From: Paramoeba atlantica
Lineage: Eukaryota; Protista; Discosea
Length of the DNA stretch: 64,000 bases
Direction: 5' to 3'
NCBI GenBank assembly: GCA_977017575.1
Contig: CDRNVI010000020.1
Span: 124,001-188,000, forward strand
Position 1 is the first letter of the stretch; the number at the start of each line of letters is the position of its first letter. Of the stretch, positions 12,002 through 59,418 are shown piece after piece. The position numbers and the translations under genes are program-made. The notes beneath the pieces are model-generated. The model ran no database searches, was not told where the DNA came from, and saw only the letters and a list, made by a program, of their open reading frames with translations.

Positions 12002-15000
12002 CTAGGCTGATCCTCCCCGTCGGGATGGCGCATCCGCTAGATTTGTATCCGAACTTGTCCAGATGATTTCCCTGAACGTGCCCTTCACATAATAATCATT
12101 TCGCAGACGCTGCAACCACGACATAATAAGAGGAGGACCCGCGCACCAGCGGGACATCCATGATACTACATTCTTGTTGTCAGAGATAATGGTCACATTT
12201 TTTAATTTTCGTTCTTTACATTCCTTCAGACCCATCTCAGCAGCATACAGTTCTTTATAGGCGATTGGCTTCTCTTTCAACCAGGAGGGAAAAATACCAC
12301 TGCGATCTCGTAGATTCCCTGCTTCCCACCAGGCGAGACCCCATCTGCCCTGTGACGCGTCCACGTAGATACGCTCACTTTCATCTGCTGACTCTCCAAC
12401 GCTCCGGGGTGTGTTGATTTCGATACGATTTAGGAGTTCAATCAAGGCTGTAACAAATTCCGGTCGCATCCAGCAGGTCTTGTCCCAGTAGATCGGATTG
12501 CAAGAAAGAAACCGGGCTCTGTTGCGAATCCATAGCATCACCGTTATGTAGTCGCATTGTGCAATCCCCAGCACTCGTGCGGCCCAAAAAATAGTTCCCA
12601 GTACCTTCCACACTAAGCGATGTGAGGGCCTAGATTGGATTCGTTGAAGAGTTTCAAACGTGTTGCGCAAAGCTACCAACTTCTCAATAAATTCGCGGGG
12701 TAAACAAAGGGTCTTTCGAGATAGATCTACCTGAACGCCTAAAATGGTTCCCGCCTCTTGCGGCGGTGTTGTAACGACTAAAGTGGCTGAGACTTTTTCT
12801 GCTCTTACTAAAACTTCACCGATGTCGTTCTCCAAGTCCTTTGTTGAATTTGAGAACCGGTAGCCATTATCAATGAACATCAAGGTTTCACTTTTAGCTC
12901 CCGGTAAATGGTGAAGAATGGATGTAGCGGCATGTGCGATCTTCACTGAACTCTTCCACCCCATGGGTAATGTAGACCAAGCGTATGTGCGACCCGAAAC
13001 ACGAATCGCAAAGAATGGTAACGCCGCTTGTGGAAGATCGAATTGATTGTACCAGCTCTTCCCGTCTGTTTCGCAGAAAAAGTCGTGCCTCCGAATCATG
13101 TCTGCAATGTCAGATAACCCCGGAAGCTCTAATGGTCCGGGAACCATCTCCTGTATCTCGTTCAGTGGGATCGCATTTAGTATCGCTCTTAAGGTACGTT
13201 TTCTCTGTTTTGGAACTAGAAACGCTGACATCCAGATTTTCGCTTTTCGACGCGGTAATGGTTTCAAAATACCACTTTTCACTAAATCCCCTAAAAAGGG
13301 GGCGAGGTACTTGGATTCGCCACTGTAGACAGGTGTACATTTTGTACACGTCAAACTGCTAAAATGTTCATCTTCTAAGTATTTTAATATATTGACTTCA
13401 GCTTCCAGGTGTTCTGCTTGTGCTAGGCTTTTTAATAATTCTAAATTTAAACGCGTCGCTGGCATCGGGTCCAAAGGCCATTGCGGCGGTTTCTGTATGT
13501 TTCTCTCGCTAAAAAGTTTTCCGGAACGCGCATACCCGTATGACGCGAACTCATATAATACTTTCCATGGCGAGGTGCCGACACCTATTGGTGCGGCGAC
13601 GCAGGCTCCACTATCTGTGATCGCTTCGTTTTTGTTGGGACATGTAGGTCCCGCTCTATATCGGTCTCCATCTCTCTTAAAGCTTCCATATCCTCCTGTT
13701 CCGCTTTTGCCAGTTGCCGCTCTTGTTCGTCCAGTTTGGCTTTTTTGAATCTCGCTCGTGATTGAACTGGGGACGCGTAGTCCGTCCCCGTTGGGTTGTA
13801 CAGGTATGCAGGAACTCTGTGCCTTTTTATCTGCGGCGGGGGATCGTAATGAATTATTGAGGCGGGGTTTGGTGGCGGCGTTGGTTGCGGAGGTGGGGTC
13901 CAATGATCTGCATCCTGAAACGTCAGGAAATTGAACGGGGTCGGCGGGGTGGCGAAACCGGGTGTGAGAAGTGGGGTGGCGCGGTTTGATGCTTCCTGAT
14001 ATGGGGTTGCTTCCCGAAGAGCATGCGGACATTCCCCCTGACCCAGCGTCTTCAGATGTGATGTAGCCGCGCGAGGGGCAGGAGAAACCCCCCTCGGATC
14101 CGGAGTATCTTCCTGAGGGACCTCGGACCGCGAGGCAGAGGGGGTCCTTATCGGATCTGGGCTTTCTGTCCGTGGTGTCGTGGCTAGAAATAAGGCCTGG
14201 ACTGGAGCATCTGTTTCCCGATTGATCTTCGGCTGGACAGGGCAAGGGGAAAGGGGAAAGTGTAATTGACTTCGAACACCCTGTTGCTGGGGGGCCGACC
14301 CGAAAACGGGGGTGGCAAGCAATTGAAAAGGAGGGGGGGTTCCAAACAGGTTTCGTAGTGCTGATGGGAATCGATGGTTTTGATCTCGTTTGCAAGGGCT
14401 CTCGGAAAACGGAGTAGTGAGTTCCGGTACGGTGGAAACAGGAACGCTTCTGGCCAATATTGACACTTTGTCGGGCGGGGGAAAATGTGGAAACAGGTTT
14501 GATAACGGAAATGCTCGTGCCACCTTTTGATACAGGGGTGTCTCGAACCTCTGGTGGTTCGAGCAGGGGGGGTTTAAACTCGTCGTTTCGACAGGTGAGT
14601 CCACGGGTATAAAACTGTCCTGTTGCTCCGATGGGTCCGCCTGCCTCATTTCGCAAGGAACCCTTTTCTCCATTAACCTGGAGAAAATTTGGGTCCCCGG
14701 GAGAGGTGAATCGATCTCGATGATCGACCCCCTCGTTGATGGGGTCCGCGGAGTATTTTCCAACGTAGTCGTTCGACTCTCTTCTACAGGAAATTCTGAA
14801 TACAGGGGAGCGGGTTGTCCTAATAGTCTGGACACTTCCAGACCTTTTACCGCTTTCGGATCCATATAGGATCCCAGGTACGCCCGGAGAGAGTTTTCCG
14901 ATACGTGCCGAGTCAAACATTGAATGTCTTGCGCTGAGACTTCCAAAGCCGCCATGTGTTGGAGCGCTCCCCTGCGAATGGAATATAGACTGAAACGGTC

Positions 15001-15907
15001 TCTCAGTCGAGGGTGATTCAGCGCCGCCGGTAATTTCTTCAAGGCGAGATTTAGAGTTCTCAATTCTACTCCCTCGAACCACTGTTCGCGACCTAACCGG
15101 CGAGCATTCCACAGAGACGTCCGAATTGTCCTTCTCCAGACCAGCGGGACCACCATTCTTATGCAGCGCGGAGTACTTCTTTCCTGATTCGTAACATTCT
15201 TGGTATGACTTAGCATCCATGTGAGTTTCGTCGTTCGCCTCGGAAGTCACTGACACTTCGTCTACGTCCAGAGCTAACAGTTCTCCAGGTCTCTGTCCGC
15301 TGAGCCAATAAACCATCACGAACGTTTTTTTGATCTCTGTTAACTGCGGTTGATCCAAAAATTGAATTACTTGTTCGTGGGTCATAGGATTTGCCTTTAT
15401 AGCGGGAGTGGCCCTCCTCATCATGGCCGCTTTCAAAGCGTCTATTCGAGCTATATCCAGTTTTACCCCCGAGAACGAGTACTCGTTTACCAGATGGCAC
15501 AGGTATTGTACCACCGTTTGACCTTTTACCTTCTCTTGGTCGTATAGATGGAGAGCGAAAGCTGCAAGCATTCTCTCTTCGTCTAGCACATATCCCAAGG
15601 TGTGGACTCCTTCCACGAAACTCACGAATCTCCTCCATATTCTTTTCATGATCTCCAGGAGAAAACTTTGGAATGATTTCCAGGAGAAAACTTTTCGCGG
15701 AAAATGTCTTCCGCTCGTCGCACGCAGCTGTCTAACACGTCTTCCGGAAGCTCTATATAAATTATGTTTTTCAAAATCTGATCGTGACCTAAAATATAAT
15801 CTCTGATCGGGACCTGGCCGGGACCAGGGCAGTTTACTTTCTCCACGGCACGGCCTCCCGAACAGCCGTACCGCGACAGGGGTCGTCCGGCCCCGGGGTC
15901 CCGTCAC
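12002..15907 (-). CDS. As-assembled 1301-aa ORF: YR N-terminal half (from ATG 15649), long linker, reverse transcriptase, DIRS-type RNase H
   Basis: YR box I WLSGQRPGELLAL. RT motifs FLVPKQ..LRAILN, ETDGKSWYNQF, LPMGWKSS, FIDN. RNase H motifs YVDASQGRWG, KELYAA, ISDN, NLADAPSR. Confidence 0.88.
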   Translation of the reverse strand: MTGPRGRTTPVAVRLFGRPCRGESKLPWSRPGPDQRLYFRSRSDFEKHNLYRASGRRVRQLRATSGRHFPRKVFSWKSFQSFLLEIMKRIWRRFVSFVEGVHTLGYVLDEERMLAAFALHLYDQEKVKGQTVVQYLCHLVNEYSFSGVKLDIARIDALKAAMMRRATPAIKANPMTHEQVIQFLDQPQLTEIKKTFVMVYWLSGQRPGELLALDVDEVSVTSEANDETHMDAKSYQECYESGKKYSALHKNGGPAGLEKDNSDVSVECSPVRSRTVVRGSRIENSKSRLEEITGGAESPSTERPFQSIFHSQGSAPTHGGFGSLSARHSMFDSARIGKLSPGVPGILYGSESGKRSGSVQTIRTTRSPVFRISCRRESNDYVGKYSADPINEGVDHRDRFTSPGDPNFLQVNGEKGSLRNEAGGPIGATGQFYTRGLTCRNDEFKPPLLEPPEVRDTPVSKGGTSISVIKPVSTFSPARQSVNIGQKRSCFHRTGTHYSVFREPLQTRSKPSIPISTTKPVWNPPSFSIACHPRFRVGPPATGCSKSITLSPFPLPCPAEDQSGNRCSSPGLISSHDTTDRKPRSDKDPLCLAVRGPSGRYSGSEGGFSCPSRGYITSEDAGSGGMSACSSGSNPISGSIKPRHPTSHTRFRHPADPVQFPDVSGCRSLDPTSATNAATKPRLNNSLRSPAADKKAQSSCIPVQPNGDGLRVPSSITSEIQKSQTGRTRAATGKSGTGGYGSFKRDGDRYRAGPTCPNKNEAITDSGACVAAPIGVGTSPWKVLYEFASYGYARSGKLFSERNIQKPPQWPLDPMPATRLNLELLKSLAQAEHLEAEVNILKYLEDEHFSSLTCTKCTPVYSGESKYLAPFLGDLVKSGILKPLPRRKAKIWMSAFLVPKQRKRTLRAILNAIPLNEIQEMVPGPLELPGLSDIADMIRRHDFFCETDGKSWYNQFDLPQAALPFFAIRVSGRTYAWSTLPMGWKSSVKIAHAATSILHHLPGAKSETLMFIDNGYRFSNSTKDLENDIGEVLVRAEKVSATLVVTTPPQEAGTILGVQVDLSRKTLCLPREFIEKLVALRNTFETLQRIQSRPSHRLVWKVLGTIFWAARVLGIAQCDYITVMLWIRNRARFLSCNPIYWDKTCWMRPEFVTALIELLNRIEINTPRSVGESADESERIYVDASQGRWGLAWWEAGNLRDRSGIFPSWLKEKPIAYKELYAAEMGLKECKERKLKNVTIISDNKNVVSWMSRWCAGPPLIMSWLQRLRNDYYVKGTFREIIWTSSDTNLADAPSRRGGSA
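13585..15216 (-). CDS. Tyrosine recombinase C-terminal catalytic half plus Pro-rich tail, overlapping the RT ORF in another frame
   Basis: LSHTKN (catalytic Lys region), SLYSIRRGALQHM (HxxR box with Tyr), LTRH..SLRAYLG (His/Tyr nucleophile box). Confidence 0.85.
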   Translation of the reverse strand: MLSHTKNVTNQERSTPRCIRMVVPLVWRRTIRTSLWNARRLGREQWFEGVELRTLNLALKKLPAALNHPRLRDRFSLYSIRRGALQHMAALEVSAQDIQCLTRHVSENSLRAYLGSYMDPKAVKGLEVSRLLGQPAPLYSEFPVEESRTTTLENTPRTPSTRGSIIEIDSPLPGTQIFSRLMEKRVPCEMRQADPSEQQDSFIPVDSPVETTSLNPPCSNHQRFETPLYQKVARAFPLSNLFPHFPPPDKVSILARSVPVSTVPELTTPFSESPCKRDQNHRFPSALRNLFGTPPPFQLLATPVFGSAPQQQGVRSQLHFPLSPCPVQPKINRETDAPVQALFLATTPRTESPDPIRTPSASRSEVPQEDTPDPRGVSPAPRAATSHLKTLGQGECPHALREATPYQEASNRATPLLTPGFATPPTPFNFLTFQDADHWTPPPQPTPPPNPASIIHYDPPPQIKRHRVPAYLYNPTGTDYASPVQSRARFKKAKLDEQERQLAKAEQEDMEALREMETDIERDLHVPTKTKRSQIVEPASPHQ

Positions 15908-51916: not shown

Positions 51917-52305
51917 CGTGCCTAGCTTCTTGGTAGGTTGCGCAACCATTTGCTTTTCCCATTGCTTTTTTTACTTTCTTTTGACTCGACACAGAATGCT
52001 AAACTTAAACACTATTTATTATTACCAGAAATTAGTAGGAGCAAAACAAAGACCTGTAACTTTTACTAACTGCTTAGTACGTATCCGATTCCGATTATAC
52101 CACTAAAAGTGCTACTCTATATTTCGTGCTTGTATACCCTAATACATGGTATACTGAACTCTTTAAGATTTATACCAGAAATGGTTGGACCTCTGTCAGA
52201 GGGGGTCCTTACCATACGCCATTTTTGTCACCTAAACCACACTCCACTTTACGTGTTTATCAACATACACTTCAACCAAGTTGTATATTTTACTCCGTAC
52301 TCTCC

Positions 52306-53904
52306 ATGCATTCTACCCAACTCCTATCCTCTTTACGAGCCTTCTCAAAGCTCAACCCCCCGACTCACATCACCCACCACCTCCATACCTTCCCTCCCCC
52401 TATCACATCCCCCACCACACATCCCTATTCCACCCACCCCGAACTCACCCCCACCCAACAAACCTTTCTCACCAACTTCCGTACCCGACTCGCCTCCGAG
52501 CCCGGACCTCAAGATTTTGACCTGTTTACTCCTCCCAACAACACCAACACACAAGATATTCTGGGGAGTATCTCTACGTCTCTCAACAATAATAACAACA
52601 ACAACAACACCACACAGAATATAGAGACCATTTCTACGCCTCCCAACAACACCAACACCACACAGAATATAGAGACCATCTCTATGTCTCCCAGCAACAA
52701 CAACACACAGACTGTAGAGACGATCTCTACGCCCCACAACAGTTCTGTTTCTACTTCCTCCTCCCCCTCCCTCCCCACCACGACCTACCCTATCAACATT
52801 CCCTCCCCCACCACCCGCGGCCGCTCCCCCCTCCCCCCGTGGCTGCGCCTCGCCCTCCCCAAGGGCCCCCGCGCCTACCCCCACTACCTGCGCCTCAAGG
52901 CCCAGATGCGCGCCCACCGCCTGTCCACGGTGTGCGAGGAGGCACGGTGCCCCAACATCGGGGAGTGCTGGGGGGGCGGGGACTCCGGGGTCGCCACCGC
53001 CACCGTCATGATGATGGGCCACGAGTGCACCCGGGGGTGCCGGTTCTGTAGCGTCCAGACCCGGCGCCACCCGAGGCCGCTGGAGGAGGGGGAGCCGCGG
53101 CGGATTGGAGACGCCCTGCGGGGGCTGAACCTGTCCTACGTCGTGCTTACGATGGTGGACCGGGATGATCTTCCGGATGGGGGGGCGGGGCATGTGGTGA
53201 GGACGATTGGGGAGATTTTGCGGGGGAGGAGGGAGGGGAGAGGGGAAGGTGATGACCAACAAAAGGAGGATTTGGTTATGAAACCGGGTAACTCCACCGA
53301 ACATGAGATTACGCCGCACGAAGGGGACAGCGAAAAGGTATTGGAATCTTGTGTTGTGTCAGGGGGTGACGACTCACGGGATCTTCTCATTGAGTGTCTT
53401 GTGGGTGATTTCCGCGGGAAGCAGAGTAGCATTGAGAAAGTCGCACATAGTGGTTTGCATGTTTATGCCCACAACTTGGAAGTGGTTAGGCGGATTACTC
53501 CCTATATTAGGGACCGTCGTGCGTCGTACGACCAGTCCTTACAGGTGCTGCGGTACGCGAAATCGGTAAACCCAAAGCTATTCACAAAGTCGAGTCTCAT
53601 GGTGGGGCTCGGGGAGACTATGCGCGAGGTGGAAGAATCCATGCGGGATCTCAAAGACGCGGGGGTAGACTTCCTCACCCTGGGTCAATATCTGCAGCCT
53701 GACCGCAGCCGCAAAAAAGTCGAGCGTTTTGTTCACCCCGATGAATTTGAACACTACAAGTCTTACGGCGAGAATTTGGGGTTTCTCTATGTTGCCAGTG
53801 GTCCCATGGTGCGTTCCAGCTACAAGGCAGGAGAACTCTTCATTCGGAACGTAGTTCAGGGGAAAAGACAGTCCCGGCAATTAGAAAATTCTCCACAAAT
53901 CTGA
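52306..53904 (+). CDS. LIAS: Lipoyl synthase, mitochondrial
   Basis: TVCEEARCPNIGECWGG, CTRGCRFC (radical SAM), VDRDDLPDGGA, YAHNLE, TLGQYLQP, GPMVRSSY; ATG 52306 with a presequence-like start. Confidence 0.96.
   Translation: MHSTQLLSSLRAFSKLNPPTHITHHLHTFPPPITSPTTHPYSTHPELTPTQQTFLTNFRTRLASEPGPQDFDLFTPPNNTNTQDILGSISTSLNNNNNNNNTTQNIETISTPPNNTNTTQNIETISMSPSNNNTQTVETISTPHNSSVSTSSSPSLPTTTYPINIPSPTTRGRSPLPPWLRLALPKGPRAYPHYLRLKAQMRAHRLSTVCEEARCPNIGECWGGGDSGVATATVMMMGHECTRGCRFCSVQTRRHPRPLEEGEPRRIGDALRGLNLSYVVLTMVDRDDLPDGGAGHVVRTIGEILRGRREGRGEGDDQQKEDLVMKPGNSTEHEITPHEGDSEKVLESCVVSGGDDSRDLLIECLVGDFRGKQSSIEKVAHSGLHVYAHNLEVVRRITPYIRDRRASYDQSLQVLRYAKSVNPKLFTKSSLMVGLGETMREVEESMRDLKDAGVDFLTLGQYLQPDRSRKKVERFVHPDEFEHYKSYGENLGFLYVASGPMVRSSYKAGELFIRNVVQGKRQSRQLENSPQI
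52531..52740 (+). repeat. Coding N/T-rich minisatellite in the LIAS N-terminus
   Basis: Units PPNNTNT(T)Q.IETIS[T/M]; caacaccacacagaatatagagaccat recurs at a 48-nt spacing; (aac)n tract. Confidence 0.85.
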
Positions 53905-54045
53905 AGAAAATCTTTTCAAATAGAAACATCTAGCATAATTCTAAAGAATCTTTTATGATCTAGCGTGATCTCATGTAGTATCGCAAGATCACCTTAGATC
54001 GTTCATTTCTTAAACATTTGTTTGTTTAATATTGGCTTCATATTG

Positions 54046-54627
54046 ATGCGCCGACTTCACCGTTTGGTGTCCTGTGTCGGTACATTGGTTGTCCCTACAG
54101 CTGTCCGACACTGCGCCACCTCGACCAAGAAATACGATCTGTTTGGATATGAAGTGAGTACCAACACCCAACCCTGGATGGAAAAAATTAAAAAAGTGCA
54201 ATATTACGACGAAGCTGGAGATCTAATGGTGCAAATGAATCTTCAAAACACTCCGCCCGACCTAGCGACGTACAACACCGCGCTTCAAAGAATCTACGAG
54301 TGCGAGAAGAAGCAAAAGGATGCAACACCCGGGGAAAGTAAAGTGTGTGCGATGTTGGACATCATTGAGGAAATGGAGCACCGGAACAAGATCAAGTCGA
54401 ATGGTGAGACCTGGAGTTGGGTAATGAAGGCCTGTGTGCAGTGCGGCAACTTCCGTGTAGGTCGGGTTGTCGAGGCGTGCATGGCACACGACCACGGGGG
54501 ATGTCCAGAAGATCTGGTACGGGACAATGAGGCAAACGCGCAGAAAGCCACAGCCGAGGGAAAAGAACATCCCGGAAATTTATCAAAGCAAACGGCACTA
54601 TTTGATACAGTTAGTGCTACAACTTAA
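54046..54627 (+). CDS. F1-ATP synthase subunit p18 (Euglenozoa-specific, PPR-like)
   Basis: KYDLFGYEVSTNTQPWMEKIKK..YYDEAG, PPDLATYN, AMLDIIEEMEHRN, WSWVMKAC, EGKEHPG closely follow trypanosomatid p18 as I recall it. Confidence 0.92.
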   Translation: MRRLHRLVSCVGTLVVPTAVRHCATSTKKYDLFGYEVSTNTQPWMEKIKKVQYYDEAGDLMVQMNLQNTPPDLATYNTALQRIYECEKKQKDATPGESKVCAMLDIIEEMEHRNKIKSNGETWSWVMKACVQCGNFRVGRVVEACMAHDHGGCPEDLVRDNEANAQKATAEGKEHPGNLSKQTALFDTVSATT

Positions 54628-55101
54628 TATTAAATGTACCCCCACCGCCGGCGATCTGCTCTACTATATTACATAACATGCCACACAATGTAGTATATTC
54701 TTGGCGTTTTTACGCTTTTAATGCTACAATACTCAATATTCTGCAAACATTATATGAAGCTTGTATCGATTAAAAAATGTATTTTAAATGTACCCAAACA
54801 CTATTGAACTTTGGAACAGTACTGACCAGCAGCTTTGTCTGACTGACGCCAACGTAATCTTTTCTGCGTTTATGTACTTTTAAGGTTTCCGTGAATACAT
54901 ACTTGCAAAGGTTGCGCGGCTATACGTTGTATCTTTGTAATAGTCCAGCAGATTCCGATATCCGCTTGATACAAATTTTAAAGGGTGTGCTACAATTTTA
55001 TTTTGTCTAACGTACGAATTTTAATATTACACGTTCTATCTTTTCTTGTTTTGACTTGAATACACAAGTAAATATTTCGAGATGCTGTCGAGCAAGTGGG
55101 A

Positions 55102-56391
55102 ATGTCCATGATAGGGATGATCGGAAAACTCATGGTTAGGAGTGCAGGAGTTGCCTCTACTAAGTTCTTTACGCGCGGAAATTTATCGACACCCATTCTA
55201 AACAAGTTACAGTCTTTTAGTTTTTGTTGTTTTCACGGAACCTCTGCTTTACTCACAACTAAGAAGAAAAAAAGAAACAAAAAGAAAAACGCTCAAAAAA
55301 ATGCTCAAGAGCAAAATAATATACCGTATTTGGGTGTCAGAGAGAGCCGATTTAAGCTAGAAAGGGAAATAGGTTCAAGCGAGACACGGCAAATACGTAA
55401 AATGGCGCATATCGATCAAGTACGAAGAGCAGTTTTCCGGCAGATAGATAGGGCGGAGAGTCGTGCAGCGAAACGGCGTTTCCGCGCTTCTCGGAATACT
55501 CCAGACCCCGGCGGCAACCCATCCTTTGTAGAGCAGTCTCGAAGCATGTGTCAGAAGGTGCTGATCACTCTTAGTCAGTGGAAGATGGAGGACTGGGTTC
55601 GTCACATGGTCACGGATCTGTTTTATTGTGTTGGAACGGAAGGATGGAACGTAGTACGAGCCAGCTGCCGAAGGCGTAAACATACCATCGAGCCGCTACC
55701 GGTCAGTTCCTCTGCGGTTTTTATTGATGCCTCGCGTCATGGCTGGGGACTGGTTCACCTCGCGCCTACACGTTTTGCCATCGAAAGTGCTGCGTACAGC
55801 TTGGAATTTATAAGGCGCGGTACCCATGACGAGGAGCTCTTGGCGGCCGTACATGGAATTACACATGCGCTGGCCACGTTTACTGGACTGCGGACCTTGC
55901 ATGTTTTCAGTGATGCTATAGGACTTGTTCGTGCACTGGAACAAATCAAGTTTGAGAAATGCCTCTTACCAGATGCAGATTTAATACTGCGAGGGGCGGA
56001 TCGAAGGCGCGAACAGTTTGTAGAAAAACGACAATGGATATGGATCAAGGAACTGCAAAATTTACTGTTCGAAGAAAATTGTCATTTACAAGTGCACTGG
56101 ATTCCGGGCATACTCAACATCGCTGATCCTGTTACGCGGGGCTTGTTTCCTAGCGTAGTTCAAGGTTCTAGTGCAAAATATCATGTCTCTGCGAAGCCTC
56201 CCTCATCGGCACGCCAAACACCAGGAATGGCTAACCCGGGCGTGATAAATCTTTTTGCAGGTATATACCCGACACCTACACCAGGATGTAAAAGTGCCAT
56301 GAGGGGAGGAAAATCTAAGAGCAAGAATCAAAGTAAAAAAGCCATCAGAAAAGAGCGGAAACGAGCGAAAAGAAAAAATAGGCAGAAATGA
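55102..56391 (+). CDS. Stand-alone DIRS-type RNase H domain protein with basic termini
   Basis: VFIDASRHGWG, EELLAAVHG, VFSDA, WIPGILNIADPVTR give four RNase H acidic residues. No RT motifs upstream. ATG at 55102 or 55132. Confidence 0.72.
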   Translation: MSMIGMIGKLMVRSAGVASTKFFTRGNLSTPILNKLQSFSFCCFHGTSALLTTKKKKRNKKKNAQKNAQEQNNIPYLGVRESRFKLEREIGSSETRQIRKMAHIDQVRRAVFRQIDRAESRAAKRRFRASRNTPDPGGNPSFVEQSRSMCQKVLITLSQWKMEDWVRHMVTDLFYCVGTEGWNVVRASCRRRKHTIEPLPVSSSAVFIDASRHGWGLVHLAPTRFAIESAAYSLEFIRRGTHDEELLAAVHGITHALATFTGLRTLHVFSDAIGLVRALEQIKFEKCLLPDADLILRGADRRREQFVEKRQWIWIKELQNLLFEENCHLQVHWIPGILNIADPVTRGLFPSVVQGSSAKYHVSAKPPSSARQTPGMANPGVINLFAGIYPTPTPGCKSAMRGGKSKSKNQSKKAIRKERKRAKRKNRQK

Positions 56392-56782
56392 TACAATTTA
56401 AATTGTACGATATTTTCCACTCTTCGACACGTTGGAAGGATTTTTACAGATTCTCTCACATGGCTCTCAGACGGTACTTTGATCCACCCACTTTGAATTG
56501 CTGTAGCATACACGTTCCGATAAATAGAACTTCCATGTACATGTACATGTACATCAACCTTTTCGTATGTACATATACATCAACCGTTTTTTTTGAATCA
56601 ACCTATTCATATCACCCTATAACCAAGAGTCCTTTTATGGATTTTTCTGAGTAATAATTTAGTGTTTCTCGTCCTATAACCATACGTACATTTGCATCAA
56701 ATTAATTTTCCTAACAATGGCGTCCGCGCACCACATGCACAAGCGAGATGAAAAATTCATGTATCAAGTTCCTTAATGAGTG

Positions 56783-58582
56783 ATGTCATCACCGAATATC
56801 AAGGGGCAAGAGCTGGAAGGGAAATGCGTCTTGTTTGTCAGGACGAGTAGTGACAGTCGAGTCGTCGCCTATCGCACACTGTACGAATCGGGAGTTCGCA
56901 TAGTGATGGTACACCCCCATGTTGTAAGTTGGGCGACTCCTTACGTGTGGAAATGGATTCTTACCGACACGCAGAAGGTTGAGCCTATGATAGCACATGT
57001 GCAACAGGAAATTGAGTCGTTACAAGTAAGAAGTTACCCATCGGAAGCTCTTATTGACGGTGTTCTCTCCTTCGACGAGTATGGGGTTTATCCAGCCGCG
57101 GCGCTAGCAACTGCTCTGGGTAAAATTTCGTGTCCTGCGCCTGTCGAGGTAATCCGTTGCACTCATGACAAAGCTCGATTTAGAAATTGGTGCCACGACA
57201 CAGGGTTGTGCGCCCCATGGAGTCGTAGCATTCGTACGTTGGGCGAACTACAAGGAATTCTTCGCTTATTGGCGGACAATGAAGGCGGGCTAATCACTGA
57301 TGCAGACCGAATGTCTAAAATAGAAACGGGAACAAAAATGCGAGCAGTGCACTGCTCGCACTTGATACAATTTCCTTTAATTGTAAAGCCCAATCCCGGT
57401 GCTGGTGGGGCTTTGGTACAAAAATGCGAAGACTATGCACAACTCAAGTGTGCAGCTCAAAACGTATTGAGTATTCTCAATAAATCAAATGGCGGAAACA
57501 TTCCAACGCCACCCACTTTACCTTATGAAGAAAACGTGAGCGACGAATCCGAACGCGTGAATACTGAGCAATCGCCATCGACTCCTATCCGCTGCTTGTC
57601 AAACACACAATCTGCTTTCAATGAGAAGGAACGAGATCACTGGAATGCACTAGGTACACCACTCTCTGTGCTAATTGAAGAATACATAGAAGGCCCAGAA
57701 GTGGACATTGACTGCGTCATTCACCATGGAGACTTACAGTATGCCTTGGTTTCTGATAATTGCGCTCCGCATAGTGCGCCATATTTTGTGGAATCGGGAG
57801 GACTAGCCCCAAGTGCGCTACCGAGCGAGGCGCTGGAGAAGCTCATTTGTCTCACAAGAAAGTTTGTTGCCATACATGGCTCGCAATTAAACACTGTTAT
57901 GCATTTTGAAGCCAAATATGACATGCGCAGAAATAAAGCATACGTTGTAGAAGTCAACCTCAGACTCGGCGCTGCGGAAACGCACGCGCTGAATTTAGCT
58001 GTCACAGGAATTGATCTGGCAGTACAATATTGTCGCATCGCGTGCGGACTTTCTCCTACCATTCATGCTCGTGCGAAAGCCGCATATCCGATTAAGGAAC
58101 ATGTCTGGAAGCTTGCGGAAAATACGTTTTTACGAAACTGTTCGCTTCCTGTCACCGCGCATCCCACAGTGAAATTTATCAGTGCAATTCACGTTGAACA
58201 CCCTACTACACCCCTTTTGAACGCAGGAAACTCTGAAACTTCCAAATCATCGGACAACACAAACACGTTTCACTTTATCACCCCAGCTTTATATCCGCAT
58301 ACGCTCTCAGCGAACCAATATGTCGCTACTTTAAACTTCCCTCCATGTTCGGTGGCAGCAGTTTTGCGTGATCAATGGGTGGTACCGAGTGTTCTCGATG
58401 ACCCTTGTTACGTAGGACATCAGCTGTACTGGTCTGTGGGCCAGGAACTTCACCCACCACCCCATCGAAGCACGGCATTGGGTTGGATTGCAGCACGTGG
58501 TTGCACGCCACAATCCGCAAGGGACAGCTTAGAAAAGCTGGCCTCCCAGGTTCATTTTCAGTTCGCACTTTTAGAAGGGTAA
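56783..58582 (+). CDS. ATP-grasp ligase (carnosine synthase / L-amino-acid ligase-like)
   Basis: DGVLSFDE, DKARFR, FPLIVKP..GAGG, LIEEYIEGPEVDID, HFEAK, VEVNLRLG. Confidence 0.85.
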   Translation: MSSPNIKGQELEGKCVLFVRTSSDSRVVAYRTLYESGVRIVMVHPHVVSWATPYVWKWILTDTQKVEPMIAHVQQEIESLQVRSYPSEALIDGVLSFDEYGVYPAAALATALGKISCPAPVEVIRCTHDKARFRNWCHDTGLCAPWSRSIRTLGELQGILRLLADNEGGLITDADRMSKIETGTKMRAVHCSHLIQFPLIVKPNPGAGGALVQKCEDYAQLKCAAQNVLSILNKSNGGNIPTPPTLPYEENVSDESERVNTEQSPSTPIRCLSNTQSAFNEKERDHWNALGTPLSVLIEEYIEGPEVDIDCVIHHGDLQYALVSDNCAPHSAPYFVESGGLAPSALPSEALEKLICLTRKFVAIHGSQLNTVMHFEAKYDMRRNKAYVVEVNLRLGAAETHALNLAVTGIDLAVQYCRIACGLSPTIHARAKAAYPIKEHVWKLAENTFLRNCSLPVTAHPTVKFISAIHVEHPTTPLLNAGNSETSKSSDNTNTFHFITPALYPHTLSANQYVATLNFPPCSVAAVLRDQWVVPSVLDDPCYVGHQLYWSVGQELHPPPHRSTALGWIAARGCTPQSARDSLEKLASQVHFQFALLEG

Positions 58583-58773: not shown

Positions 58774-59418
58774 ATGAATAGTAGCAAAAAGGCCGTTATT
58801 TGCTACCTAGCACAGCGCTTTCGAGGTCATACAGCACCTGTAGTTTCCCATTGTTCTCTCCGATCAGGCACGATAGACTCCGCCATTCCCATTTTTACGT
58901 CGAATATTCGGCAGGCGAGCTCAAGTGCAAGAGGTTGGGAGATGTTTAATCATACTCACGACTCTGCGAACACGTTCTCGGGCGAAGCACGCGAGCAGGA
59001 ACTTTTTCTTCTCCACAGTGATCCTCTTCACGTTTTGGGATTAAATGCGGCCACGGCAACAAAAGATGACATTGAAAGGTCTTTTAAAACTAAATCCGCA
59101 GTTTGTGACCCCAACTCCCCACATGGTCGTGCCAGAGCGTCTGAGCTTAAGCAGGCTCGGGCACTACTCTTAGACCCAACGTCAGCGTATTATCGAGGCA
59201 CGCGGGTTCCTGGGGATCCTGCACGTATGCGACTTTTTATGAGACTCCTACCTGCGCGGCAACGCAGGATGGGGTATATTTATTCCTTTGTTATGGGGGT
59301 TGTTTTATTCGTACTTATATTTTGTTTTCTTCGAAGTTTGTTTACCCCTCTTTTGGTATCCCGACGGCACATACGTCAGTCTGTAAAAAGCGCTAATGCG
59401 CGACGAAACCTTGATTAA
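58774..59418 (+). CDS. Probable mitochondrial membrane protein with a J-like domain (no HPD)
   Basis: Presequence-like N-terminus; DPLHVLGL...DDIERSFK...ELKQARALLLDP resembles a DnaJ helix pattern; C-terminal TM segment. Confidence 0.55.
   Translation: MNSSKKAVICYLAQRFRGHTAPVVSHCSLRSGTIDSAIPIFTSNIRQASSSARGWEMFNHTHDSANTFSGEAREQELFLLHSDPLHVLGLNAATATKDDIERSFKTKSAVCDPNSPHGRARASELKQARALLLDPTSAYYRGTRVPGDPARMRLFMRLLPARQRRMGYIYSFVMGVVLFVLIFCFLRSLFTPLLVSRRHIRQSVKSANARRNLD

Follow-up and report, generated by a model that had tools for sequence, protein, structure and literature searches.

We analysed a 64,000-nucleotide stretch (the window) of contig CDRNVI010000020.1 from the Paramoeba atlantica assembly GCA_977017575.1, which contains at positions 55096-56391 on the plus strand a gene for a stand-alone ribonuclease H (RNase H). 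A first-pass annotation made from the sequence alone had proposed that this gene is an exapted RNase H of the DIRS type, and its fold, catalytic residues, profile homology, phylogeny, occurrence as one copy per haplotype, synteny, and purifying selection all agree with that proposal. On this basis the gene very probably encodes a domesticated retroelement RNase H that has been kept by selection. Taken as a whole, the data are best explained by an old domesticated RNase H whose likeliest role would be the processing of mitochondrial RNA:DNA hybrids, and we consider this explanation probable. There are well-documented cases in which gag, protease, integrase, and envelope genes of retroelements were domesticated. 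Our search of the literature returned no report of the present family or of the capture of an RNase H alone from a tyrosine-recombinase element, which is not proof of absence.

The gene, its relatives and the RNase H domain

The reading frame is uninterrupted over 431 codons (431 amino acids when counted from a GTG) and ends at a stop codon at 56389-56391. In-frame ATGs are found at 55102, 55108, 55117, and 55132, and the true start is probably one of these. A 9-codon upstream open reading frame (ORF; ATG to TGA, 55083-55112, plus strand) overlaps the first in-frame ATGs in another frame, and a polypyrimidine tract just 5' of it (~55033-55053) may mark a trans-splice acceptor. Two copies of the RNase H gene are present in the genome (45.7 Mb, 248 contigs), on C20 and C63 (G000:C63). 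Because these loci share 99.46% identity over 4.3 kb with their flanks included, they were taken as two haplotypes of one locus; the ORF length is identical in both. Three single-nucleotide polymorphisms fall within the coding sequence, one of them non-synonymous (E83V), and since three differences are too few, the haplotype comparison was not used to assess selection. Contigs of three DNA runs (one in fragments) cover the coding sequence, with no indel reported inside it. As had been claimed, the ORF is intact and co-oriented with the host genes, lying within a long run of plus-strand genes.

To define the family, we made use of several searches. Apart from the query protein, a phmmer search with residues 100-375 against 1.84 billion representatives gave two true relatives, namely P0002 (329 amino acids) and P0003 (323 amino acids). 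A word-index search with the window protein alone returned only that protein, and the same type of search with an alignment to which P0002 and P0003 had been added returned two further relatives, P0006 (316 amino acids) and P0007 (352 amino acids). A DNA-pattern scan of metagenomes found only the contig that was already known. The first feature match in the Atlas was a Euglenozoan cluster that carries the name of a phosphatase. The resulting five stand-alone proteins are all free of stop codons inside the ORF.

The domain that these proteins have in common is an RNase H domain of the retroelement type (RT_RNaseH / VIPER-DIRS-like), which in the window protein comprises residues 197-350 (55684-56145, plus strand) as judged by AlphaFold2 (AF2), Foldseek, VIA, and hhalign. 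It is preceded by a charged, predicted-helical linker (residues 73-196; 55312-55683, plus strand) that is lineage-specific and aligns poorly among the orthologues. No homology of this linker to reverse transcriptase (RT) or to any family was detected, and the hhalign match described below begins at residue 197.

An AF2 model of the domain built on a four-row alignment (A2) reached a predicted local distance difference test score (pLDDT) of 78.9 and a predicted template modelling score (pTM) of 0.74. It shows a five-stranded mixed sheet with helices, the elements following the order beta1-3, alphaA, beta4, alphaB, a short low-confidence alphaC, a long alphaD, beta5, and alphaE. A single-sequence AF2 prediction of the stand-alone protein was unusable (pLDDT 38). 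The best 50 Foldseek matches in the PDB were all RNase H enzymes or RNase H domains of reverse transcriptases. With VIA-align, the model superimposed on the archaeal RNase H1 of Halobacterium with a Z of 14.2 and a root-mean-square deviation (rmsd) of 2.3 A over 120 residues, and on the RNase H domains of the HERV-K and HIV-1 RTs with a Z of ~11. The nearest ESM-Atlas models were mostly retroelement polyproteins (Pao/BEL-like and Ty3-like; TM 0.63-0.74). Residues 197-350 are thus predicted to form a type-1 RNase H fold with four carboxylates at the canonical positions. The best superpositions were those on RNase HI enzymes of the archaeal type (Halobacterium 4e19, Sulfolobus 3aly, and LC11 3u3g; Z 13-14, rmsd 2.3-2.6 A over ~120 residues), yet the identity to these proteins is 12-18% and there is no relation at the sequence level; the archaeal resemblance comes from the compact core that these enzymes have in common, not from descent.

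All four acidic residues had been reported as kept, and indeed no substitution is seen at D211, E247, D273, or D344, either among the five stand-alone proteins or in the RNase H of a retroelement elsewhere in the window. The catalytic Asp211 (55726-55728) is part of a DAS motif in strand beta1, Glu247 (55834-55836) is located in helix alphaA, and Asp273 (55912-55914) lies at the end of strand beta4. The fourth, Asp344 (56125-56127), belongs to the motif N341-x-A343-D344-x-x-x-R348 (56116-56139), a hallmark C-terminal motif that is also found in the RNase H domains of the elements. When all five proteins are aligned, the complete set of invariant positions consists of D211, A212, S213, W217, G218, E247, H253, G254, H257, D273, W335, P337, G338, N341, A343, D344, and R348; all these features are on the plus strand.

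Two features set the stand-alone domain apart from those of the elements. The motif H253-G254-x-x-H257 (55852-55866, plus strand), which directly follows the catalytic Glu, is kept without exception by the stand-alone proteins, and the RNase H domains of the elements lack it. An insertion of ~25-45 amino acids between alphaB and alphaD (residues ~283-315 of the window protein; 55942-56040, plus strand) shows up as a gap in the element rows of the hhalign alignment; four of the five members have it (P0003, P0006, P0007, and the window protein) and P0002 does not. This insertion sits where cellular RNase HI has its basic protrusion, in a part of the model where confidence is low. Both features appear, from the alignments, to be changes that were gained since capture. 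Such changes could be taken to mean that the fold was kept in a protein that is no longer catalytic, and that merely binds nucleic acid or acts as a scaffold. We regard this as quite improbable, because the four carboxylates are invariant even though the proteins are only 23-33% identical to the window protein, which would be hard to explain without catalysis.

Retroelement ancestry, synteny and selection

The first-pass annotation had drawn attention to motifs that mirror those in the RNase H of a tyrosine-recombinase (YR) retroelement in the same window. The RT/RNase H ORF of this element is located at 12002-15907 on the minus strand, with the RNase H as its C-terminal ~135 amino acids (12005-12400). 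The motifs are present in both ORFs at the places named (DASRHGWG starting at 55726 and ADPVTR at 56122, with element counterparts at 12361, 12256, and 12037), which on its own is weak evidence. A BLASTP comparison of the stand-alone protein with the element ORF gave 24% identity over 122 amino acids (E 0.012) in a single domain, and as this match is marginal, the resemblance could not be judged from pairwise BLASTP alone.

Since structure cannot separate cellular from retroelement enzymes, the type of RNase H was determined with profiles. For this, a profile of the five stand-alone proteins (A4) was compared by hhalign with a profile of six RNase H regions taken solely from long retroelement ORFs of the genome (A5), and with a profile of five RNase H domains of the PF00075 type, taken from ORFs in this genome that resemble long interspersed nuclear elements (LINEs; A6). 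Once the orthologues were included in this way, the resemblance was decisive: the element profile A5 matched over residues 197-350 of the window protein with a probability of 98.4% (E 5e-15), against 3.7% for the PF00075-type profile. A grouping with cellular RNase H, which would have argued against exaptation, was looked for at the sequence level and not seen. In addition, P0002 had a below-threshold match to PF17919/PF17917 (16.5-18.5 bits versus cut-offs of 24.8 and 29.8), and P0003 weakly matched the model of the C-terminal (RNase H) part of the hepadnaviral polymerase. The latter agrees with the link that has been described between the RNase H domains of VIPER and hepadnaviruses (PMC6681497).

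The elements from which A5 was built have a gag-like ORF, an overlapping ORF, and an RT/RNase H ORF, which according to the ORF maps is the layout described for VIPER. Three of the scanned element ORFs passed the RT_RNaseH (PF17917) cut-off of 24.8 (27.2-31.4 bits). Matches to RVT_1 on element ORFs (19-29 bits) and to Phage_integrase on one overlapping ORF (E 0.009) were weak and remained below the Pfam cut-offs. At least a dozen distinct VIPER-like families with these three ORFs were observed in the genome.

In a maximum-likelihood tree of 29 RNase H domains (~145 columns, rooted on the LINE-type domains), the five stand-alone proteins grouped, with a support of 89/99, with the element clade to which the RNase H of the window's own element belongs; this clade is the nearest to the stand-alone gene. 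These sequence comparisons support the view that the stand-alone RNase H derives from a YR (VIPER/TATE/DIRS-like) retrotransposon and not from the PF00075 type. Transfer in the opposite direction, in which the clade of the window element would have captured a host RNase H gene, also predicts that the stand-alone proteins and this clade group together (89/99), and the internal order of the group is unresolved. We nevertheless judge it very unlikely. In every YR element family of the genome, the RNase H is placed C-terminally in the same way and has identical motifs, the PF17917 type is characteristic of retroelements across eukaryotes, and neither the trypanosomatids nor Bodo, where VIPER/TATE elements have been reported (PMC6681497), yielded the stand-alone gene.

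The stand-alone protein shares with the RNase H of YR elements (VIPER/TATE, DIRS order; PF17917) the same fold, the motifs DAS..WG, E, D(N), and N-x-A-D-x-x-S/T-R, and the nearest position in the tree. It differs from them in that there is no fused RT, that gag and YR ORFs and repeats are missing, and that the gene is single-copy, syntenic, and under purifying selection. Moreover, the stand-alone family has gained a presequence-like N-terminus, basic tracts, the HGxxH motif, and the alphaB-alphaD insertion. The claim that no RT, YR, gag, or terminal repeat is found nearby held up: a tblastn search of the three ORFs of the window element against 53900-57000 matched the RNase H part only, with no RT, YR, or gag, and no meaningful direct or inverted repeats were found around the gene.

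A profile search of the whole genome gave more than 100 YR-type RNase H matches, nearly all of them C-terminal in ORFs of 900-1400 amino acids. The stand-alone gene was represented in this search by its two allelic copies only. At least 150 further RNase H matches in the genome are of the PF00075 (LINE) type. The retroelement load of the genome is very high, and many of the RNase H matches are located in intact ORFs of 900-2800 amino acids.

We next considered the position of the gene. Immediately upstream of the RNase H gene is the gene for p18 (54022-54627, plus strand), a PPR-like subunit of the mitochondrial F1-ATPase with 201 amino acids, and immediately downstream is a gene for an ATP-grasp ligase-like protein (56780-58582, plus strand), followed by a gene for a 214-amino-acid protein of unknown family (58774-59418, plus strand). 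These three genes served as synteny anchors, and the intergenic gaps to the host genes on either side of the RNase H gene are only ~470 and ~390 bp. P0006 (L036:8001-8951) and P0007 (L037:8001-9059) are encoded on 1.4-Mb contigs within co-directional arrays in which the gene order is threonyl-tRNA synthetase, the p18 orthologue, RNase H, ATP-grasp, the orthologue of the 214-amino-acid gene, and histone deacetylase. P0003 (L005:8001-8972) is found in the same array without the ATP-grasp gene, and the absence of this gene from an otherwise collinear array is a clean lineage-specific gene loss. P0002 is encoded on a 3.6-kb metagenome contig with different neighbours. The same gene neighbourhood is thus kept in at least four distantly related species.

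BLAST identities of the syntenic orthologues to the window proteins were 46-51% for p18, 33-34% for ATP-grasp, 25-32% for the 214-amino-acid protein, and 26-30% for RNase H. As the values are alike for RNase H, ATP-grasp, and the 214-amino-acid protein, the RNase H gene diverges about as fast as these two host neighbours. When codons were aligned, synonymous differences proved to be saturated in every pair, their proportion (pS) being 0.74-0.90, for which reason we give pS and the proportion of non-synonymous differences (pN) instead of a dN/dS ratio. The pN was 0.25 between P0006 and P0007, 0.33 between P0003 and either of these, and ~0.5 (up to 0.53) in comparisons with the window gene. These values are far below the saturated pS, which argues for long-term purifying selection, and the saturation of synonymous sites between orthologues argues that the domestication is old.

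The simplest challenge to domestication is that the frame belongs to a decaying retroelement fragment and is open by chance. It is true that the similarity to elements is confined to one domain and that the one possible RNA run covers p18 only. However, ORFs are intact in five assemblies, three of the four orthologues occupy the same position among host genes, pN is far below the saturated pS, the gene is single-copy, and it is not flanked by element sequence. Synteny and the low pN in particular effectively refute this explanation. Likewise, a multi-copy fragment evolving neutrally, which would have spoken against the original proposal, was looked for, and the outcome was one copy per haplotype with pN well below pS.

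The closest published case is a gene domesticated from VIPER that occurs in Leishmania (Viannia), Leptomonas, and Crithidia (Ludwig & Krieger 2016, PMC5146736). There too, a pol-derived piece of a YR element was kept as a syntenic host gene without other remnants. That gene encodes ~940-990 amino acids with the C-terminal half of the RT/RNase H region, whereas the stand-alone family has 316-431 amino acids and RNase H only. Its neighbours are a Ran-binding zinc-finger gene and a conserved hypothetical gene instead of p18 and ATP-grasp, and it is confined to Leishmaniinae, whereas the stand-alone gene is found in non-trypanosomatid kinetoplastid lineages.

Putative targeting signals and possible function

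The first-pass annotation had described the start of the protein as acid-free and presequence-like, and by simple proxies this property extends to all five stand-alone proteins. In the window protein, the first acidic residue is residue 72 when counted from the GTG and residue 70 from ATG 55102. The N-terminal part (residues 3-55; 55102-55260, plus strand) contains no Asp or Glu, is rich in Ser and Thr, and carries a net charge of +4 over its first 30 residues. Across the family, acidic residues first appear at positions 24, 31, 45, 52, and 60-70, compared with a median of 10 in 48 neighbouring proteins. Four of the five have a net charge of +4 to +5 without an acidic residue in their first 30 amino acids, and in the background a charge of at least +3 without an acidic residue in the first 30 was seen in 6 of 45 proteins. 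By these simple proxies, each of the five N-termini is acid-free, Arg-rich, and presequence-like, and resembles that of the p18 mitochondrial precursor. P0002 and P0007 begin in this style as called; for P0003 and P0006, the frame is open upstream of the called start as far as an ATG, the use of which would add 43-50 residues of the same character. Because the N-terminal sequences cannot be aligned, it is the property and not the sequence that is conserved.

The Lys/Arg-rich tracts that had been pointed out are likewise present, one Lys-rich at residues 56-69 (55261-55302, plus strand) and one Lys/Arg-rich in the C-terminal tail at residues 403-431 (56302-56388, plus strand), both read directly from the sequence. 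P0003, P0006, and P0007 have C-terminal tracts comparable to this tail, and P0002 has no basic tail. After the basic tract, P0003, P0006, and P0007 share an acidic/aromatic C-terminal motif (D-L-D ... D-M/L-F-x-D-F-Y-K-x-x-F) that the window protein and P0002 lack, and which may be a partner-binding peptide.

The N-terminal features suggest a mitochondrial location of the stand-alone RNase H, to which we hold tentatively, with doubt slightly outweighing belief. The main rival is a domesticated enzyme with a nuclear or nucleolar role, either in the removal of R-loops in polycistronic units or as a restriction factor against RNA:DNA intermediates of retroelements. Both the N-proximal and the C-terminal Lys/Arg-rich tracts look like nuclear or nucleolar signals, and the basic tracts are equally good evidence for such a role. 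With more than 100 RNase H copies of the YR type and at least 150 of the LINE type in the genome, a defence function would have a plausible target, and in P0003 an internal Met placed exactly at the end of the presequence-like stretch would allow for a non-mitochondrial isoform. On the other hand, all five orthologues keep the acid-free, Arg-rich N-terminus that is typical of mitochondrial precursors, and P0002 is devoid of any basic tail. We therefore consider a nuclear or nucleolar role unlikely, though clearly less so than the other alternatives discussed above.

Very probably, an ancestor of several kinetoplastid lineages captured the RNase H domain of a YR (VIPER/TATE/DIRS-like) retrotransposon and kept it as a single-copy host gene. 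Its product has four parts, namely a presequence-like stretch that would serve as targeting peptide, the charged linker that differs between lineages, an RNase H with all of its catalytic residues, and the Lys/Arg-rich tail. Catalytic activity, mitochondrial location, and substrate are what we infer: the N-terminus would direct import into the mitochondrion, where the enzyme would most likely carry out metal-dependent cleavage of the RNA strand in RNA:DNA hybrids, while the basic tracts would hold it on nucleic acid. Primers of kinetoplast DNA replication, or R-loops on this DNA, are the candidate substrates. The specific roles proposed in the first-pass annotation (R-loops, kinetoplast DNA primers, and a restriction factor) all fall within what we can infer for the mitochondrial and the nuclear possibilities.

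In kinetoplast DNA replication, SSE-1 and PIF5 take part in primer removal, the kinetoplast DNA enzyme Pol beta-PAK carries a proline-alanine-lysine-rich extension, and the kinetoplast DNA primases are reported to be virus-related (PMC10719067). Given this extension and these primases, a basic-tailed nuclease derived from a mobile element would not be out of character. Mitochondrial RNase H1 serves primer removal in other eukaryotes (PMC6182146), and cellular RNase H1 (PF00075) has the same fold and DEDD chemistry as the stand-alone protein; the proposed removal of RNA:DNA hybrids in an organelle is the same in kind. The stand-alone protein differs from cellular RNase H1 in that it has no PF00075 match, in the hhalign probability of 3.7%, and in that no hybrid-binding domain was detected.

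As to the distribution of the family, the window p18 is 53-62% identical to proteins of Trypanosoma, Leishmania, and Bodo, which the sources name 'ribonucleoprotein p18, mitochondrial precursor'. In a p18 tree, the window's organism grouped with EukProt PhM-4 and two environmental sequences (SH-aLRT 98); PhM-4 is a free-living prokinetoplastid (PMC7859406). The three syntenic species formed a separate long-branched kinetoplastid clade, and the trypanosomatids and Bodo saltans were placed elsewhere. The genes that follow p18 are unrelated in T. brucei gambiense, Leishmania guyanensis, and Bodo saltans, and no frame within 14 kb scored better than E 0.3 with the family profile. An exhaustive single-sequence phmmer search gave no match in named trypanosomatids. 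Either the RNase H gene is older than the split of these lineages and was later lost, or it is confined to a subset of kinetoplastids. Recruitment into kinetoplast DNA maintenance before the split of deep kinetoplastid lineages, one of them allied to prokinetoplastids, with later loss or replacement in eubodonids and trypanosomatids, is a speculative possibility that we doubt more than we believe.

In keeping with a kinetoplastid genome, a spliced-leader-like word, CAGTTTCTGTACTTTGTTG, occurs 11 times in it and never in a reversed control. Its copies are dispersed singly on many contigs (e.g. C3:645510-645528) without one tandem array. A spliced leader in the loose ends of run X5 was ruled out, as these ends differ from each other, and the other runs consist of DNA-like contigs.

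Several observations weigh against an ancient retroelement-derived enzyme with a mitochondrial function. At the level of ancestry, searches of Pfam (including PF00075, with none at E <= 1) and of PDB sequences with the stand-alone protein gave no match, and profile A2 gave no usable match in Pfam or PDB searches either. In the best tree the stand-alone proteins form one side of a branch, with weak support (70/62), and the long terminal branch of the window protein (1.52) makes its fine placement unsure. The RSCU (relative synonymous codon usage) of the RNase H gene had a correlation of -0.01 with the pooled host genes, the lowest of the genes tested, and its GC content at third codon positions (0.43) is within the range seen in host genes (0.40-0.81); codon usage has no discriminating power here. 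With respect to expression, there is one possible RNA run, and its coverage reaches p18 only. With respect to targeting, P0003 and P0006 have their N-terminal extensions only if they start at upstream ATGs that were passed over by the gene caller, and the basic tails would also fit nuclear or nucleolar localisation. Finally, as the gene was not found beside p18 in T. brucei, Leishmania, or Bodo, it does not have a universal kinetoplast function.

If the enzyme acts on kinetoplast DNA, an already unusual replication system would include a primer-removal or R-loop enzyme derived from a mobile element beside its virus-related primases, and the gene would also be a marker for poorly sampled kinetoplastid lineages. 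If it acts against the abundant retroelements, the host would have turned an element's own enzyme against the element. Either way, the stand-alone RNase H family offers a clean, testable case with defined catalytic residues.

Further features of the window and genome

Upstream of p18, the window encodes a lipoyl synthase (52126-53904, plus strand). Its ORF has a long N-terminal extension with Asn runs and a threefold 'T-Q-N/T-I/V-E-T-I-S' repeat, followed by LIAS_N and radical-SAM domains, and its true start probably lies downstream of the GTG that is listed. Scans for Rfam families and for tRNAs across 53500-57500 gave no matches.

Two further observations concern RNase H sequences elsewhere in the genome. 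At G000:C147:30765-46416 there is a tandem array of ~20 units with a spacing of ~748 bp, the ~250-amino-acid frames of which contain PF00075-type RNase H (61-63 bits); a tandem arrangement of units that consist of RNase H alone is unusual for LINE-type elements. At G000:C44:116533-117849 (L059:1534-2850) and G000:C94:120018-120395, a frame of 439-464 amino acids ends in a YR-type RNase H (weak PF17917 match, E 0.003). This frame is shorter than the usual pol ORFs of 950-1400 amino acids, and may represent either an element that was truncated or another short gene for RNase H.

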